This document shows positions 1 through 61,105 of a stretch of DNA of 64,000 nt, in pieces (positions within the stretch are counted from its first letter, which is position 1; each line of letters opens with the position of its first letter). Location of the stretch: contig RHPI01002262.1 of the NCBI GenBank assembly GCA_009103225.1, positions 186,001-250,000 of the forward strand. Direction: 5' to 3'. This DNA is from Chlorokybus atmophyticus (taxonomy: Eukaryota > Plantae > Mesostigma and Chlorokybus algae). A program made the position numbers and the translations under genes. Under the pieces are notes generated by a model. The model was not told the DNA's origin. It was given only the letters and a program-made list of their open reading frames with translations, and did not search any database.

Positions 1-899
1 TGGATTATAAGGAATTTTTGAGTTGAATTCGGGAGGAATATCACAAATTGAGATAAATTGTGACAGACCTCACTCATGGTAGTGTTGTTTACTACCATAG
101 CCTAGTGGTCAAGCCCCAATTGTCACAATGATGATGTGTATAGCTTTAGCATGCAGCGTCTATGCATTTTCAAAATGTCGCCGCGTCCTCAATTGCGTTG
201 GGGAGTACAGGCGCATTGTTAATGAGTTGGTTACAACTGTTATCACGATTTACACATGCCTTTCTCACGACTTAAACCTTTAATTACGTCAAAGAAAAGA
301 ATCTTTGACATTGTTCAGGATCTAGTGCTTACAATTGTCACCAGCGGAGTGCCGTTTGTGACAGGTTGTATCAATATTTCGGCTACAGTCATAACATATA
401 TATGGATCCGCCGTGAAGTTTACAAAATCCGCAAGTTATGTCCAACTTCGTCCATTACAAAGTTGCAGATCCAGCCTGACTTGCCGAAACCCTTTTCTAC
501 CGATGAAGGACACATGTCCTCACCTTGTGGTTGAAGAGCTTTGGCACCCCCGTGAACGGCCTCTCACCCGAACACCCCACGTGAAGCCCCACACGAGGAA
601 GCACGGCAAGGCAATGTAGACCCAAGTCTCTAATGCCTTGCCTACTGAGCATACTCACTCATTTATATACCCCTGGTGCCTTATCTAGTCACTTAAGGGT
701 GGTGGGTGTTTCCACCAATGGTGCCTCGTTCGGACCCTAATGTAATTTAAGGCCAACCATCTTGTGACAAGCACTCTTGCACTTGCCCTTATTAGGCTTA
801 CACCAATCACCTTGAAGGATATCATACCCCTAAGTATGAGCAAGCAATGAAATTGTACTATAATCTCATGGTATTGGCCACACGGTTTTGTGGCCACAG

Positions 900-44647: not shown

Positions 44648-44757
44648 NNNNNNNNNNNNNNNNNNNNNNNNNNNNNNNNNNNNNNNNNNNNNNNNNNNNN
44701 NNNNNNNNNNNNNNNNNNNNNNNNNNNNNNNNNNNNNNNNNNNNNNNNNNNNNNNNN
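44648..44757. other. Assembly gap flanked by poly-C
   Basis: N run with C homopolymers on both sides. Confidence 1.
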
Positions 44758-53216: not shown

Positions 53217-54312
53217 GAACAAGTATGGTGTACCCGGTGTTGTCTACTTGTAAGATAGGCTGCTCTACTTTGTAGTATTGAGCACGGTAGGTAAGTGTAG
53301 TGCGGATGCCATCTGCATTATAGGTGCAGTGTCCTTGCTACTGCATGGGCGTGCAGTGCTGTTGTATGCGCCATGGACGATACACTACTGCATGCAGTTG
53401 GGCCTTTGGACAATTTGTGCATGGACAAACTATGTGTTTGGGTATTGTGGTGGTGTTATGTTTGCAGTCACGAAGCTTGCAGTTATGTGCAGCTAGCAGC
53501 AGTATGAGTACCTTATTTACCCGTATAGAAATTCTTTGTGCACCAGAGTCCCCGGCAAAAACGGGTTGAGTTTAGGTAAATACCTACAAACTACCACAAT
53601 TGTCACGTGGGGCCATCTGCCCAACAGTCACACTCAATAGGAGCATGTCACGCTGATGATAGTGTCACTACGTTGAGCACAAGCCCCAAGGGAGGGAGCA
53701 CCAAGCTGTTGGTCTTGCGCCCCTTAGCGTCTGACCTCAGCCCCCTAGCTGTAATAATAACAGCGCCACCAAGGGTGGGGCACGTGCCTACTGCAGAACT
53801 AACGACGACTTTGCACATTGAAGTGATGCACGACAGCCACAGCGACATAGTTAGCCCGGTGGTCGTGCATATGGCATTCAGGTGCGTGGGATGTGTTGCA
53901 TAAATTGCATGGCATTGAAATGCATGCTTATAACAGCCTCATGCTTACCCTGTATAATAGCCCCATGACATCCACATCCATTACTTAGATTAAGTGCAAG
54001 TGTTGCAGCTGCTGGCAACATATGCAAGATGTTGGAAAGAGATATGTCGGTCATGTACAATGTACCAAGGGACATTATTCGTACCCTTGTCTTGCAAAAC
54101 CTGTTTGCTGTCATTTGCTTGAGATCGCGTGGGGTTATGGACCTGCCGGCCCAGAGACTACCATAGTAAGCTGCAGCCCAGCCTGTGGCTTCTCAACCAA
54201 AAACTGAATTCCTACAGCATGAGTTACACAAAACGATATTTTGCAAACAAAAGATATCGCAAGCAAGCGTGGTGTAAACAGTCAGCTACGTGGCATATAC
54301 AACAGCATGAGC

Positions 54313-57300
54313 CTACTCATAGGCAAACACTTCAAGAGGCGTGGCGTCAACATATTCATAGAACTCGGTAATCTGACTGCCGTTAAACTTGGCAACGCTG
54401 CCGCGCACAAGTGGTGTCAGGACATTCCGCACACATGCAACGCAAGACCAAGAAGTAGTTGCGGTGTGCGCATCTGTGCAGTCGTTGTCAACGTACCTCA
54501 CAATGGGCAGCACCAGCTGTTGGCCATCAGTTCTGGTGTACGTTGCCTGCAGCTCCCCAATGACAGTGCCGTCAAACTCCCAGACTTGCAGCAAATTGGT
54601 GCGTACACTTGACACACCCTTCACAAGCCTTGAGGCATTGCCGGCAATCAGAGCATTGAGGCCAACGCCAGGAGCAGCATTACCCGACCGCGACTTGACA
54701 TTATCAGAAAACGCCGAAGACATTTGGAATAGATTCCCAGAATCCAACACATTGAGGGCCTCTTGGAACACGTTCACCTGATTGCACACGTGCGTTCATG
54801 TATATGAGTTGCTTGCCTGCCACGCATGCATGAGCTGTGGTTGGTTTATGGTCTTGATGCTGCAACCATGCAAGTCACCTTACCTGGTTGGCTGCGCGCT
54901 GTCCTCTGCCTGAAGACGGTGTTCGGTGCGTGAGATCCCTCCTGAACAGGTCGAGTCCTGGGATGATGTCGGCATACACCTTGTAAGATTTGAACTTGTC
55001 CCCGGCTGTGCGGAAGATGTCCACTGAAGGGATAACGGCAGTGGATCCATCAGGGCGAGAGTACACGCCATCAATGATGGTGATAATGGTGTCACCCTGT
55101 CACATAAGGCCAGTCACTAACTGCACAGTACACCTCTGCAGCCTTTATGATATCTGCAAACCAATGAGGACATTGACCAAGTAAATACCTGAGTGAACAC
55201 TTCGACAAAGTCATGCCACAGGCGAGAGTTGCCTACAAGCGTGTAGAAGTCGAGTCCAAACCGTCGGATGCTGTCTTTGCCGGTAACAGTCATGTTGTTT
55301 CCAAACGTCAAGTCGGCATCCTCTGTGAAGAAGTTGGCAAAGTCATCGGCTGAAGTGGCTGCGTTGAGCATGCGCTCCACGTTGCTCGGCACAGCCACGT
55401 TGCTGGTCCTTGTTGGAGTCGCTGTGGCTGAAGCTTGACCACTAGTACATGACACAAACACACTTCATATGGTGAAGATGCACCCTACGTTGGTACTCAC
55501 ACTCATCACCACGCAATCTCACCTCGTGCCGTATGTAGTTGTGCCGTTGCCGCCGCTTGGGGCAGTTGTGGTTGTGGTTGTACCGTTGGTGCTGGCGTTG
55601 TCTCCGAAGTAGTTGTCAAAGAACGGCTTGTAGACATCTCTCAGGAAGTACAAGTGCTCGTACTTCTTGTAGCACGCGCCCTTGTCTCCGCAGCGCAACC
55701 ACACAACATCGCCAAAAGCGGTCATCTCTGCAGAAGCATGAGTATGGTTGCTGTATGGTTGCTGGTTGTACTTTAGGAAGCACCTGTGCGGCTTACGAAA
55801 AAGCTTACCATGTGTGCACACGTCAAAACAGACCCAATCAAATGACACGTCCTCTTCTGAGAAGGTGACTCGTGGCCACGTCATGCGCACCCTTGCGTTG
55901 CTCAGCATTGCCCACCAGGAGGACTCGTATGCATTGCCCTGATAAACACATCTGTCACTACAGCATCCACATCCTCCTCACACACGGTCCGCATCATATC
56001 ATGCGTTCAGACATGCAGGCACTCTATGAAAAGCACATGCATACTGCACAACCACTGGAGCTACACTGCATTGACCATTGACGATTCAGTGCAATATAGC
56101 CCATAACTTTTGTCCAGACCAGTGAATCAAAGGCACTCAGCACAGTGATTGTGCACGACTGTCAATCCCTACCTGTGTTCTCCCTTCCCATGCACCGCTC
56201 AAACCAGTTGGCACAGCATCAATGCCATGCTGCGAGTCATACAATGAGTCCTTGGTAAAGTATAGCAGCTCGTCCCTGTACTCGTTGAACAGCACCTGCA
56301 ATGTTGTGTCCCCTTCAGATTTTGAAGCAATAAGAGAGTGCTGAGAGCACAAACGAACAGCAGTAGCTCACCGTAAGACCACTGTACTCCTCACGTACAC
56401 CATCGATGGTGAACACTTTGTTGGCTTTGTCCCCATCGCGAAGCGCCTGTCAACAGATGTGCATGTGCGCTTGTATGGTGGTAGGCACACGTGGTGAACA
56501 CACACACAACACTTGTACCTGACAATGTGTCAACCACCAGCGCTTGTTCTCAATCTCAACCAAGTCTTTGGTGCCATACCTAAAAGTGGTGACAACAATG
56601 CCATCATAGTGTCCCGCGCCTTTCAAGCAAGCCATAGACATGCACCCTTGCTTCCAGCATAATGCACGCATGAACACACACACATGGACGTACATTTGCC
56701 GAATTTCAAACAGCGTGCGATCGCGCAGCGTCTTCCTGTAGATGCGAATGCCCTCAACGCGCAACGCGTCCTCAATGACCAGCGGGGGCGCACGGCTAGA
56801 AGCCAGTGTACTGAAGTCCACGTAAAAATCCCGGGAAGAAAGTGCAGGTGGGATGATTACATTGGTGTTTGCAAAGATCTGTCAGTGCAAAGCGGTGCGC
56901 AATCAACACGTGTTGGGCAAGAAACATCAGCAATGCAAAGTCAAACCGACCTTCCTCGCATCAACATGCACATGCATGCTGGCCTCCGCATGTCGCCATG
57001 CTCAAGACCTGTTGAAAACACGACATGGATGTCGTGCAAGTTACCTGGCCGAGGTTCATCTTCAATGCTGAATAGTAGTTTTGGGGGAACCGCTCCTGCC
57101 TTTGGAGGTATTCAAGGGCTTCATTCACCTCGTTTTCAGAATATGTACTAGGTCCAACAGCTGGAGAAGGCATGCACAGCGCAACTAGGTTGAGACAAGT
57201 GCTATATACACATCCTTGCATACTTGTATGATGCCGTTGTGCGAGCATACCAGCTGCAACCGGTGTCTGTTGGATGTAGCTGAGAGCCTTGGCAACATCA

Positions 57301-58106
57301 CTGTCCTTGTCCGTGTCATCGCAGCGCCAATCCACAGCATGCGAGGAAGAGGTGGCTGCTGAAGCGATGGCGCCTGCACCTCCAGCTTTCAAGATAGACA
57401 GCGCCTTTTGCAAATCCTACACAAGAGCAATGCAGCAACACGCACATTACCACATGGATGAAACCTAGCAGCACATGGCAAGCATCAACATTGCAATTAC
57501 GCATACCACATGCTTATGACATGAGCAGCACAATGCGCAGTGCTTGCTTGCATCTTGTTGTGCTGTATACGAACTCACTAGAAGCAACAATGACGTGTTG
57601 ACTGTTAGACAGGCAAGCAAGAATGCTTGCTTGCATTGAGCATGGCAGAAGCAGCGATGGGAAGCTGAATGCAGACGTACAAGCGTTGGTTGCATGCTGT
57701 TAGCATCGCAGATCCTGGGCAAAATGTGTGACAGCTATGCAATGCTCCACCCGCTTACATCTTGTGTAGAGGAAGGGCCAGGGGCAGCGGTGTCCTGGGT
57801 GAGGTACTGAAGTGCCTTGGCGACGTCGGCGTCGACAGCGGAGGTGGAAGGAGCAGAGGCATGGGAAGATGGAGAGGCTGTGCTTATGCCCCCGTTGCTG
57901 CGGCTCTGATCAAGCAGGCTAAGGGCCCTGGCGACGTCGGCGCTGAGGTCGTTGAGGGCGGCAAGCACGACACCACCACGGCCACGCCTGGCAGGCGCAG
58001 GTACACGCCGGTAAAGTGAAGTCCCATAAAAGCTCGTCCTCTTTGATGACGACGACACGGAGGAGGACGACACCCCCACCGCCGCCGCACACTGCACAGG
58101 CTGCAT
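54313..58106 (-). CDS. Plastid-targeted multidomain protein: helical repeats, uncharacterised central domain, two SnoaL/NTF2-like domains; ~12 exons
   Basis: Transit peptide MQPVQCAAAVGVSSSS..RRGRGGVVLAA. SnoaL-like FANFFTEDADLTFGNN..VTGKDSIRRF...GDTII...YSRPDG...IPSVDIFR..GDK...YADI, and a second AFSDNV..GNAAPG...VWEFDGTVIGE..TYTRTDG..LVLP...ITEFYEYVDATPL. One junction near 56620-56695 is unresolved. Confidence 0.8.
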
Positions 58107-58514
58107 TGCTGCTAGCTCAGCTTAGGGGCTTCCAACAGAGCATCCACCGTCTTGGCTTGAGAACACGAGCTAATGCCCAATTCAGCTACTGCTGGGCGAT
58201 GCTGATGCCTGTGCGTGTCGTCCTTGGCCACCGCCGCCGCCTCCGTCTAGCCCGCCTTGCGCATGTCGCTGAGCTGCTGCACAGGTCTCATGAATCCGAG
58301 ACAGAAGCGCTGCAGTAGTCCTAATTCGGGCCCTGGTTTTGCTGTGGAAGACGGCTAAAACGAGTGCCTTCATGAAAAGGGCCGGTCCATACTTACAGAG
58401 GTGGTTACGCAGCAAGGCTACGTGACCATCGCAGGAAGGAATCTACAATACAAGAAAGCGGAAGTTGCTAATATTAGTTATATTATTGCATTTTACCATG
58501 CTCGTCATCCATTG

Positions 58515-58587
58515 GCCGCCCTAGCTCAGTCGGTAGAGCGCACGGCTCTTAACCGTGTGGTCGTGGGTTCGAGCCCCACGGGCGGCG
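58515..58587 (+). tRNA. trnK-CUU: tRNA-Lys (CTT), intronless
   Basis: Acceptor stem GCCGCCC/GGGCGGC, D-arm TAGCTCAGTCGGTAGAGC, anticodon arm CACGG-CTCTTAA-CCGTG, T-arm GGTTCGAGCC, 73 nt, T-run terminator about 33 bp downstream. Confidence 0.98.
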
Positions 58588-60987
58588 CATTCGTGCGCCC
58601 CCTTCTAGGCCGACAGATCTTTTTATGCTTTCACCTGCTCGCTTTGTTGTTGTCAACAGGTATCAAAGCCATTGAAGCCACCCTCTCGCTGGCACCGCTG
58701 CTCGGAATTGACCATGCGCGAAGGCAATGTGCCACGGGGTTGCGCAGACAGGAACACAAGCCCAAACAGCGAAGATCAAGCAATCTCTCACACTCCAAGA
58801 CTTCAGCAAATGCTCGTTGCTTAGACTAACGCACAGTTTATTAGCTAGGCATGCGACATCGTTGATTCACTTGTATCACATATCAAATTAAATGCTCTCA
58901 CAATTTTTAGATGTGCATTGAGCAGGCATCAATAACACCGACATACAATTGTCAAGGTCTACATGACATGAAATTGCAAATGCAAGGGCATGCGTGTGTG
59001 TAGAGTATATGCAATGCTGTGATTGTGACAAACACATGCACAAGCAATTACGGCATGCAACTTGTTGTATAACCATTGGGTTATATATAAGATATATAGC
59101 TACCATTACTGTTGCCCATACCCCATTAGTCAACATAACTTGCATAAAAGCTGCTTGAAAAGAAAGCTCAAGCCGTAAGCGGGTCAGATGCAGGCGCACA
59201 CACACGTAGTATGAATCACAATGGTGGATGAGGCGTTACAGTTTTAAGAATTACACGCACATAGCCTCACCACGCATTGCCCATGACAGGCGCGCTCAGC
59301 TAACATGTGACCCACCTAGTGCGTTCACTTTCCCTCATGGCTGCAAGCTATGCAACAACAAAGACAATAGCAATTAGCTAGAAATGGAGGCAAGGCATAG
59401 CTTTTGATTAATTAAACAACCAAGCTTAGGCTAAGATTCGACTTAGACTAAGCTCGACCCTCAACTTGAAGCAGCATGCAGGGGCAAGTGGGCAGGGTAA
59501 TAAACTCACAACCTGCAGGAGGCTAGCAGAGGGAGAGGTTCCTCGAGCAGACATTTTAATTACGCAGTGCGTAGATACATATACACAAGGCGCGCCACAA
59601 TCGGCTAGCGTTCACGCTCAAGTCGTGGCAGCATCAAACAGCAGATTGACTCCCCCTCCTCTCCCTCCATCCCTCTCCGCCACCTTCTTGTGTACAAGAA
59701 TTGACGTATGGTATATGCATCCTCATTACTCGTAAGCTTAAATGCTAGGTAATGTTCAGCGTGTGCATGAGAGTGCTTATGTGACCAAGCAAGCATGCTT
59801 CTAGCAACATGCACACCACACACCAGGCCGGCATGTTTTTTTTTCTATGTAGCTACTACACCACCTAAACTACTGCCTCCCCGTTGGACATGCATGCATG
59901 CATGCATGCATGTGCCAATGCTGATGGCTGCCTACCCACAAGACTTGATGTTGCTTCTCGTCGACAATCATGGCAACAGCAATAGCAGGCAGATGATATG
60001 CCAGAATGATCACATGCATGATGTGATTATAACGCCACTTACATTTGCAATCAGGATCCTGCGCAAGTTACATTGCGCTGATATTATATGATGCTGATGT
60101 GCACAAGTGTATGTGTTACATGTAACACATGTACTTGCAACGCATTATTGCTGCGGATATAACATTCGCCTCCGCTAATGTATTATGGTAGTTGCAAGAA
60201 AGATTGTAGCAAACACAATGCGCAACAAAGACCGCAATATATGAAAGCATTAAACAGGTGCAACGCACAGAACTTGCAGGCGGCATGTGCAACTCGTAAA
60301 GGAACGAAATATGCGCGTTGATATATAGCATTTGACACATCCGTATGTGATGGTCGAGCCAATGCCCGTTACATCCATCGTTTCGATCTGTTTACCGCTG
60401 CAAACTACAGTACATGTAGAGTCATGTGTTTATGTGATGTTAACAACCATAGTAGTTTTATATCATTATGCAGTATGTCAAACGTCTACATTGGTGGGTC
60501 ACGAAGATTTGCGCGCACTTACATGCACTTACATCAATGTATGTTATTACATGCCATTGCACTCTTATACGTAAAGTTTATTATCATTACATGTACTACA
60601 GAGGTATATATTTATTCTTCACAATAACGCTGGAACATTTTAACATGCCATTTGTTGCTTCCATAATCGTGTACACCGACAATCTTGCTTATTCGACGTC
60701 AAGGCAAGCAGCAATAGCGAGCATGGCTAAGTTGCCCCTGGTTGCGCACACAACCATGCGAGTTACTTTGGAACGTCGTCGGCCAACAAACCTCAATCAC
60801 TTGGACGATAACACTCTATGCACTCATGCTGAGTCTTCACATGGAACACCCATTGCATGACTTGAGAAAATTCTTACGCAATGTACAGCATAATACCATT
60901 TTGCAATTGACATCACCCGCTATATTGCATATCTTGCCTGATGTGGCGGCAATACAACTACACATGACCGTGTGGACCCCACCCCCC

Positions 60988-61105
60988 NNNNNNNNNNNNN
61001 NNNNNNNNNNNNNNNNNNNNNNNNNNNNNNNNNNNNNNNNNNNNNNNNNNNNNNNNNNNNNNNNNNNNNNNNNNNNNNNNNNNNNNNNNNNNNNNNNNNN
61101 NNNNN
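60988..61105. other. Assembly gap preceded by a C-run
   Basis: N run. Confidence 1.

Follow-up and report, generated by a model that had tools for sequence, protein, structure and literature searches.

An expressed gene on the minus strand of a 64-kb stretch of the genome of Chlorokybus atmophyticus, an early-branching green alga (assembly GCA_009103225.1, contig RHPI01002262.1, positions 186,001-250,000 of the forward strand; the whole stretch is called the window) encodes a protein in which four short helices on an acidic N-terminal arm (R1-R4) appear to have arisen by duplication of the first helix of the domain that follows (helix 1). From N- to C-terminus the protein consists of a transit-peptide-like leader, the acidic arm with its four helices, a middle domain of about 250 residues, a Thr/Ser linker and two SnoaL/NTF2-like domains. 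A fifth copy (R5) is, judged by alignment with relatives, the conserved first helix of the middle domain and not a free sticker. The N-terminal part is likely to be a multivalent helix-and-spacer arm, for which a multivalent docking role is plausible. The gene product is probably a plastid-targeted, enzyme-like multi-domain protein, the plastid location being suggested by its leader. This leader is probably an organellar (plastid) transit peptide, on the basis of its composition, its charge and the similar Ala/Ser/Arg-rich leaders of two paralogues (P0020 and P0021).

The helices were described by the pattern [DE][VL].[KREN]AL.[YLI][LI], which has five matches in residues 45-200 (mean of 0.0001 and maximum of 1 in 20,000 shuffles) and no match elsewhere in the six-frame translation of the window. 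An earlier note on this DNA had listed five such peptides with Ser/Ala/Gly-rich linkers; all five are present on the minus strand, and the number expected by chance for the pattern is about zero. The third one (DDLQKAL...) is present, but its first Asp is the last codon of exon 1 and the peptide spans intron 1 (codon 116 at 57759-57761, codons 117-127 at 57384-57416). The [DE] position of the motif lies at 57938 (residue 57), 57827 (94), 57416 (117), 57299 (156) and 57131 (182). Counted from one helix start to the next, the intervals are 37, 23 and 39 residues from R1 to R4 and 26 residues from R4 to R5; the spacers are rich in Ser, Ala, Thr, Gly and Pro. The copies share the core [DE]-V-x-x-A-L-x-Y/L-L/I, a common register and a consistent hydrophobic face, with a hydrophobic moment of 0.5-0.65 at each copy (11-residue windows). 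A single-sequence AlphaFold2 (AF2) prediction of exon 1 alone gave two isolated helices and low-confidence linkers, with a predicted template modelling score (pTM) of 0.25. The arm (residues ~50-175) is rich in Ser, Ala, Thr, Gly and Pro, acidic (isoelectric point, pI, 4.4; net charge -9) and probably disordered. The mature protein has a pI of 4.9.

R5 (TYSENEVNEALEYLQRQERFPQNYY) is contiguous with the middle domain, without a spacer. The flexible spacers that had been assigned to all five helices were thus retained for R1-R4, whereas R5 runs straight into the next domain. In every full-length relative of this domain (out of the eight, P0017 to P0024, described below), the mature part opens with one helix [ST]Y[ST]xx[ED][VI]xxAxx[YF][LIV]xR, then FPxNYY. 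A hidden Markov model (HMM) of this helix was built from the relatives only, the present protein being left out. It matched R5 with 16.8 bits and matched R1, R2 and R4 in register. Over residues 45-172, which exclude R5, the total was 18.5 bits, whereas none of 2000 shuffles exceeded 6.5. In the reverse test with an HMM of the five repeats, the only matches in the relatives were to helix 1, in P0018, P0019 and P0021, from which a single copy per relative follows. A repeat search of this kind and a check of the motif in homologues had been proposed in the earlier note, and they recovered the single helix 1 of full-length relatives but no array elsewhere. Since relatives that lack a leader or carry a signal peptide have the helix too, its ancestral job is, as far as this distribution indicates, not plastid-condensate targeting.

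The age of the copies was assessed from the ten pairs that can be formed among the five copies within this one gene, which is the one source of evolutionary evidence here. Amino-acid identity was 49% at the 11 core positions and 7-10% in the 11 residues on either side (random expectation 9% in both cases). Identical core residues were encoded by the same codon in 22/54 cases, with 19.2 expected at random. No DNA tandem repeat was reported by Tandem Repeats Finder, and similarity at the DNA level was limited to the 22-nt core. Because the synonymous sites are randomized and the core is kept, the copies are old, or convergent, and the peptide motif is maintained. As read from these pairs, the maintained motif is the V/A/L/Y-L face together with the acidic N-cap, the spacers being free to drift, which fits binding elements on flexible linkers. 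A recent DNA tandem duplication was ruled out by the randomized synonymous sites and the lack of a tandem repeat.

The transcript was reconstructed from public sequencing runs. A run search found four runs with part of the stretch, and contigs were placed on window positions 53400-58400, with RNA data sets dated 2013 and 2021. The transcribed region (54188..58260, minus strand) has 13 exons. Transcript contigs from two studies (2521 nt from run X1 and 2474 nt from run X2) both span 58260..54188 and skip 12 segments, with GT..AG on the minus strand at every joint. The removal of 12 canonical introns indicates that the contigs derive from RNA. The assembled exons make a 2520-nt mRNA with a single 746-residue open reading frame (ORF) that starts at the ATG at 58106 and has in-frame stops upstream. 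The helix array and all downstream domains are therefore on one mRNA in the spliced contigs of both studies. It had been claimed that the repeats are spliced into the same mRNA as the SnoaL exons, with their separation as the main ground for giving up the proposal; this separation is excluded by the contigs of X1 and X2. The proposal that the array forms the N-terminus of a SnoaL protein was correct as regards the common mRNA, but the middle domain and the Thr/Ser linker lie between the helices and the SnoaL part. At window position 54319, G was found in run X2 and A in the window and in run X1. This is the third base of a Tyr codon, two before the stop, and represents a synonymous difference between samples; the helix array is without any difference. 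A separate low-depth X1 contig at 53400-53566, downstream of the 3' end of the gene, is probably the end of a neighbouring transcript.

The middle domain had no sequence match in Pfam, NCBIfam or the PDB. A word search with the ORF of exons 8-9 led to a 257-residue Chlorokybus paralogue (P0017), and a search with P0017 led to seven more proteins. The eight relatives come from Chlorokybus (two: Chlat1 4697 and 2840), Mesostigma (three: Mv16629, Mv01578 and Mv10338), the diatom Cyclophora tenuis (one: A0A6U1NLL7) and a 341-kb ENA contig (two, on L001). Membership was based on the conserved blocks FPxNYY, EDALRIxG and YKKYEHLYxLRD and on full-length similarity, and identity ranged from 46 to 68% over 252-355 aligned residues. 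About 90 positions, those of EDALRIxG and YKKYEHLYxLRD among them, are invariant among six family members. All records found with relatives are of eukaryotic type. No prokaryotic locus of the family came up when 185,579 prokaryotic genomes were scanned with a pattern, a search of only moderate sensitivity. P0017 and P0018 have no N-terminal extension, P0020 and P0021 have the Ala/Ser/Arg-rich leader and P0019, P0022 and P0024 have a signal peptide. SnoaL domains are absent from the models of the relatives, which have a single helix; the tandem SnoaL-like pair at the C-terminus was seen only in the present protein. A highly conserved domain family without prior characterization, with three kinds of N-terminus (none, transit-peptide-like and signal peptide), is thus defined here.

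The closest relative, P0023 (Mesostigma Mv10338-RA.1, 68% identity), is likely to be the orthologue on sequence grounds. Its gene model opens with a conserved Met that lies within helix 1 and closes with a tail rich in Ala and Gly, which suggests mis-annotation at both ends; no record of the genomic locus of the Mesostigma orthologue was found. P0019 is intronless (L001 6001-7080; ENA ERZ25071859), P0024 lies on the same contig, and both have a signal-peptide-like N-terminus. Residues 70-346 of P0021 were modelled by AF2 with a 12-row alignment. The mean predicted local distance difference test score (pLDDT) was 50, with about 91 for helix 1. Foldseek with this model against the PDB gave no expectation value (E) below 0.001, and an atlas search gave template modelling (TM) scores no higher than 0.33. 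NTF2/SnoaL-like entries stand in the weak top rows of these structure searches, and the C-terminal half of the middle domain may be NTF2-like according to these fold hints.

For the two C-terminal domains, a SnoaL label is reasonable on the strength of weak profile matches obtained with exon-sized pieces. The exon-10 ORF piece matched Pfam SnoaL_4 (E 0.0013; 19.1 bits, cut-off 24), SnoaL_2 (E 0.007) and TIGR02246 SgcJ/EcaC (E 0.002), all below threshold. For domain 2, all ten best family-bearing language-model look-alikes were SnoaL/NTF2 proteins (score 0.94). Domains 1 and 2 are homologous, with a pairwise E of 3e-7 over 124 residues. Searches of PDB sequences with exon 1, the exon-10 ORF (first half of SnoaL domain 1) and the C-terminal ORF (domain 2) gave no match, and nothing relevant was found in the literature on SnoaL or NTF2 together with pyrenoid or chloroplast.

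Comparable arrays were searched for with a repeat profile of 19 positions built from the five copies, with which the present protein scores 107 bits locally. Such a profile search cannot detect single or double motif copies. The library of 1.84 billion representative proteins, which lacks the N-terminus of this protein and whose coverage of Chlorokybus is uncertain, yielded neither a comparable array nor a sister protein with the motif. The 16 weak matches, none of them above 52.8 bits, comprised EF-hand, TPR helix B, kinase subdomain and tail-fibre-like repeats. A word search with exon 1 and metagenome scans with exons 1 and 12 gave no match. Against the PDB, the profile matched only designed helical repeats whose helices start with SSSDVNEALKLI. 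Because the motif differs little from a generic N-capped amphipathic helix, weak single matches carry little information. The local resemblance to TPR helix B and to designed repeat helix starts (GDYDRALSYLEQSL; SSSDVNEALKLI) is of this generic kind, and the array differs from both in having no paired helix A and in its low-complexity spacers. A TPR reading was rejected: there is no helix A, no 34-residue periodicity (spacing 23-39 via low-complexity linkers) and no Pfam TPR match. An EF-hand reading of R1 (LDQSRSNGG loop) was also rejected, as the loop is off consensus, concerns R1 only and gave parvalbumin matches with E above 1.

In the favoured reading, selection would have kept R1-R4 as docking helices that imitate helix 1 and attach to the same surface as it does. 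The partner preferred, as the most economical one, would be the site at which helix 1 docks in this domain family, be it in cis, on neighbouring molecules or on plastid paralogues. The outcome would be either homotypic multivalent contacts leading to oligomer or network formation, or competitive auto-regulation. This model was preferred because the arm is acidic, the helix is the family's own domain helix and no sister protein was seen. Docking of the helices at the helix-1 site, with the binding and the partner both predicted from sequence features, is put forward tentatively, as a real possibility that falls short of being probable. Docking of short helices or motifs on NTF2-like domains is known from OCP, whose N-terminal helix binds its C-terminal domain, from FxFG repeats on NTF2 and from FGDF motifs on G3BP. 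These systems offer a possible precedent in that they also combine NTF2-like modules with short helices on flexible linkers. There is however no sequence relation to them, docking is a prediction here, and an NTF2-like middle domain is a weak lead. If true, the model would provide a clear natural example of multivalency obtained by amplifying the terminal helix of a folded domain onto disordered spacers, and would show how an enzyme can evolve by a simple route into a scaffold or a self-regulating assembly. The Chlorokybus/Mesostigma lineage is informative for early streptophyte plastid biology. A bolder version, in which helix-1 mimics and helix-1 sites would be self-complementary stickers that assemble a new plastid enzyme network or condensate, or would form a targeting code for one of two pyrenoid types, the scaffold having evolved by amplification of the domain's terminal helix, was considered quite improbable.

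Several points weigh against the helix-1 mimic model. Taken one by one, R1-R4 match the family helix poorly (-2.6 to 4.9 bits). The extra copies R1-R4 were found only in this protein, the array being present in 0/8 relatives seen, and the gene model of the likely Mesostigma orthologue, P0023, is N-terminally truncated. As the motif resembles generic N-capped helix starts and TPR helix B, convergence instead of duplication is possible. The poor P0021 model gives no contact information on the packing of helix 1.

The lack of extra copies in the eight relatives, the negative searches for an array elsewhere and the generic character of the motif would also suit an arm without any specific partner, i.e. 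an entropic or solubilizing spacer that remained after partial duplications of the 5' coding region long ago and is under weak structural constraint. This explanation was judged unlikely, though it deserves some weight: the 49% identity is confined to 11 residues, the synonymous sites and flanks are randomized, and an identity limited to the core is hard to explain without selection on particular side chains of one face (V, A, L, Y/L, L/I). It was regarded as improbable that a small folded helical cap is built from the five helices, packed on each other or on the middle domain of the same chain, the arm being structural and not multivalent. R5 is part of the domain and the hydrophobic face is consistent, which speaks for a cap, but the linkers are low-complexity Ser/Ala/Gly/Pro sequences that are unconserved between copies, the helices of the exon 1 model are isolated and the relatives function with one helix. 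Anchoring of the enzyme to a lipid surface (thylakoid, envelope or plastoglobule) by amphipathic helices was given the least credit and is very improbable. The hydrophobic moment of each copy speaks for it, whereas the helices are short (about three turns), with near-zero mean hydrophobicity, acidic N-caps and no flanking basic residues, and the same helix is found in soluble-looking relatives. Acidic N-caps without basic flanks are unfavourable on anionic plastid lipids.

The stickers might instead bind a heterologous plastid scaffold, such as the Rubisco of one pyrenoid type or another condensate, and recruit the enzyme body to it, by analogy with RHOP. In known linkers and motif-bearing tethers, the short helices on spacers number five or six, and the motif is shared by several proteins within one alga. 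CsLinker helices are of about 10 residues, and in Chlorella RHOP and PMTT motif arrays are fused to a folded rhodanese domain. Rubisco linkers have been screened at pI >8 (FLIPPer filter), and the helices of Ulva SUPA1 are described as positively charged (PMC11570498 among the sources). Chlorokybus has two pyrenoid types per chloroplast (PMC8611356), which would make room for such a role. The present protein resembles EPYC1, CsLinker, Ulva SUPA1 and Chlorella RHOP/PMTT/PMST in having several short helices on disordered spacers in a plastid protein (here a predicted one): at least three helices, as in the linker class, are present (four free copies and one domain-attached), with disordered spacers of 9-25 residues, behind a transit-peptide-like leader. 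It differs from them in its acidic arm, far from the pI >8 and positive helices of that class, in the lack of a Trp/Arg-type motif and in a helix that copies that of its own domain. The helix is a descendant or a mimic of a domain helix that leaderless and signal-peptide relatives have too, and no second array protein was seen in the representative library, which lacks this protein, whereas known motifs recur. A heterologous scaffold was therefore judged distinctly unlikely. The sticker-and-spacer layout of the earlier note was upheld as regards geometry and the maintenance of the cores relative to the spacers, but a pyrenoid or condensate role is disfavoured by charge and ancestry. Its tether to a pyrenoid, plastoglobule or membranes found no support, given the charge of the arm and the occurrence of the helix in relatives without a leader or with a signal peptide. 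Another comparison is offered by the encapsulation peptides of bacterial microcompartment enzymes, which are usually single-copy and bind shell proteins. They are alike in being short amphipathic helices on a poorly conserved linker at an enzyme N-terminus, with a function in recruitment; they are bacterial, whereas the present protein is eukaryotic and has four or five copies.

Table 1. Positions of the gene, the protein regions and the helices in the window (plus-strand coordinates)
Feature	Residues	Position	Strand	Basis
Exons 1-7		57759-58260, 57251-57416, 57045-57160, 56694-56878, 56519-56579, 56372-56446, 56173-56295	-	Spliced contigs
Exons 8-13		55809-55938, 55523-55727, 55189-55441, 54884-55096, 54497-54777, 54188-54397	-	Spliced contigs
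Coding sequence		58106 to 54316; stop codon 54313-54315	-	ORF of assembled mRNA
Transit-peptide-like leader	1 to ~45	57972..58106	-	Ser/Ala/Arg-rich, no acidic residue, pI 11.7
R1, SADVARALSLLDQ	55-67	57906..57944	-	Pattern; AF2 helix 43-71, pLDDT 66-78
R2, DADVAKALQYLTQ	91-103	57798..57836	-	AF2 helix 89-105; in-register match of family helix-1 HMM
R3, DDLQKALSILKA	116-127	57384..57761	-	Pattern; split by intron 1
R4, DSDVAKALSYIQQ	154-166	57267..57305	-	In-register match of family helix-1 HMM
R5, ENEVNEALEYLQRQ	180-193	57096..57137	-	Aligns with N-terminal helix of all full-length relatives
Middle domain (exons 3-9)	~177-445	55597..57146	-	46-68% identity to P0017-P0024
Thr/Ser/Gly-rich linker	~446-488	55387..55596	-	Composition
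SnoaL/NTF2-like domain 1 (exons 10-11)	~489-605	54944..55386	-	Sub-threshold profile matches; aligns full length with domain 2
SnoaL/NTF2-like domain 2 (exons 12-13)	~626-746	54316..54777	-	Language-model look-alikes; homology with domain 1

Two runs of N (assembly gaps) are present in the window, at 44648-44757 and 60988-61105. A short (ATGC)n microsatellite lies upstream of the gene (59890-59912). Upstream of the transcript contigs, about 255 bases from their 5' end, a tRNA-Lys (CTT) gene is located on the plus strand at 58515-58588.

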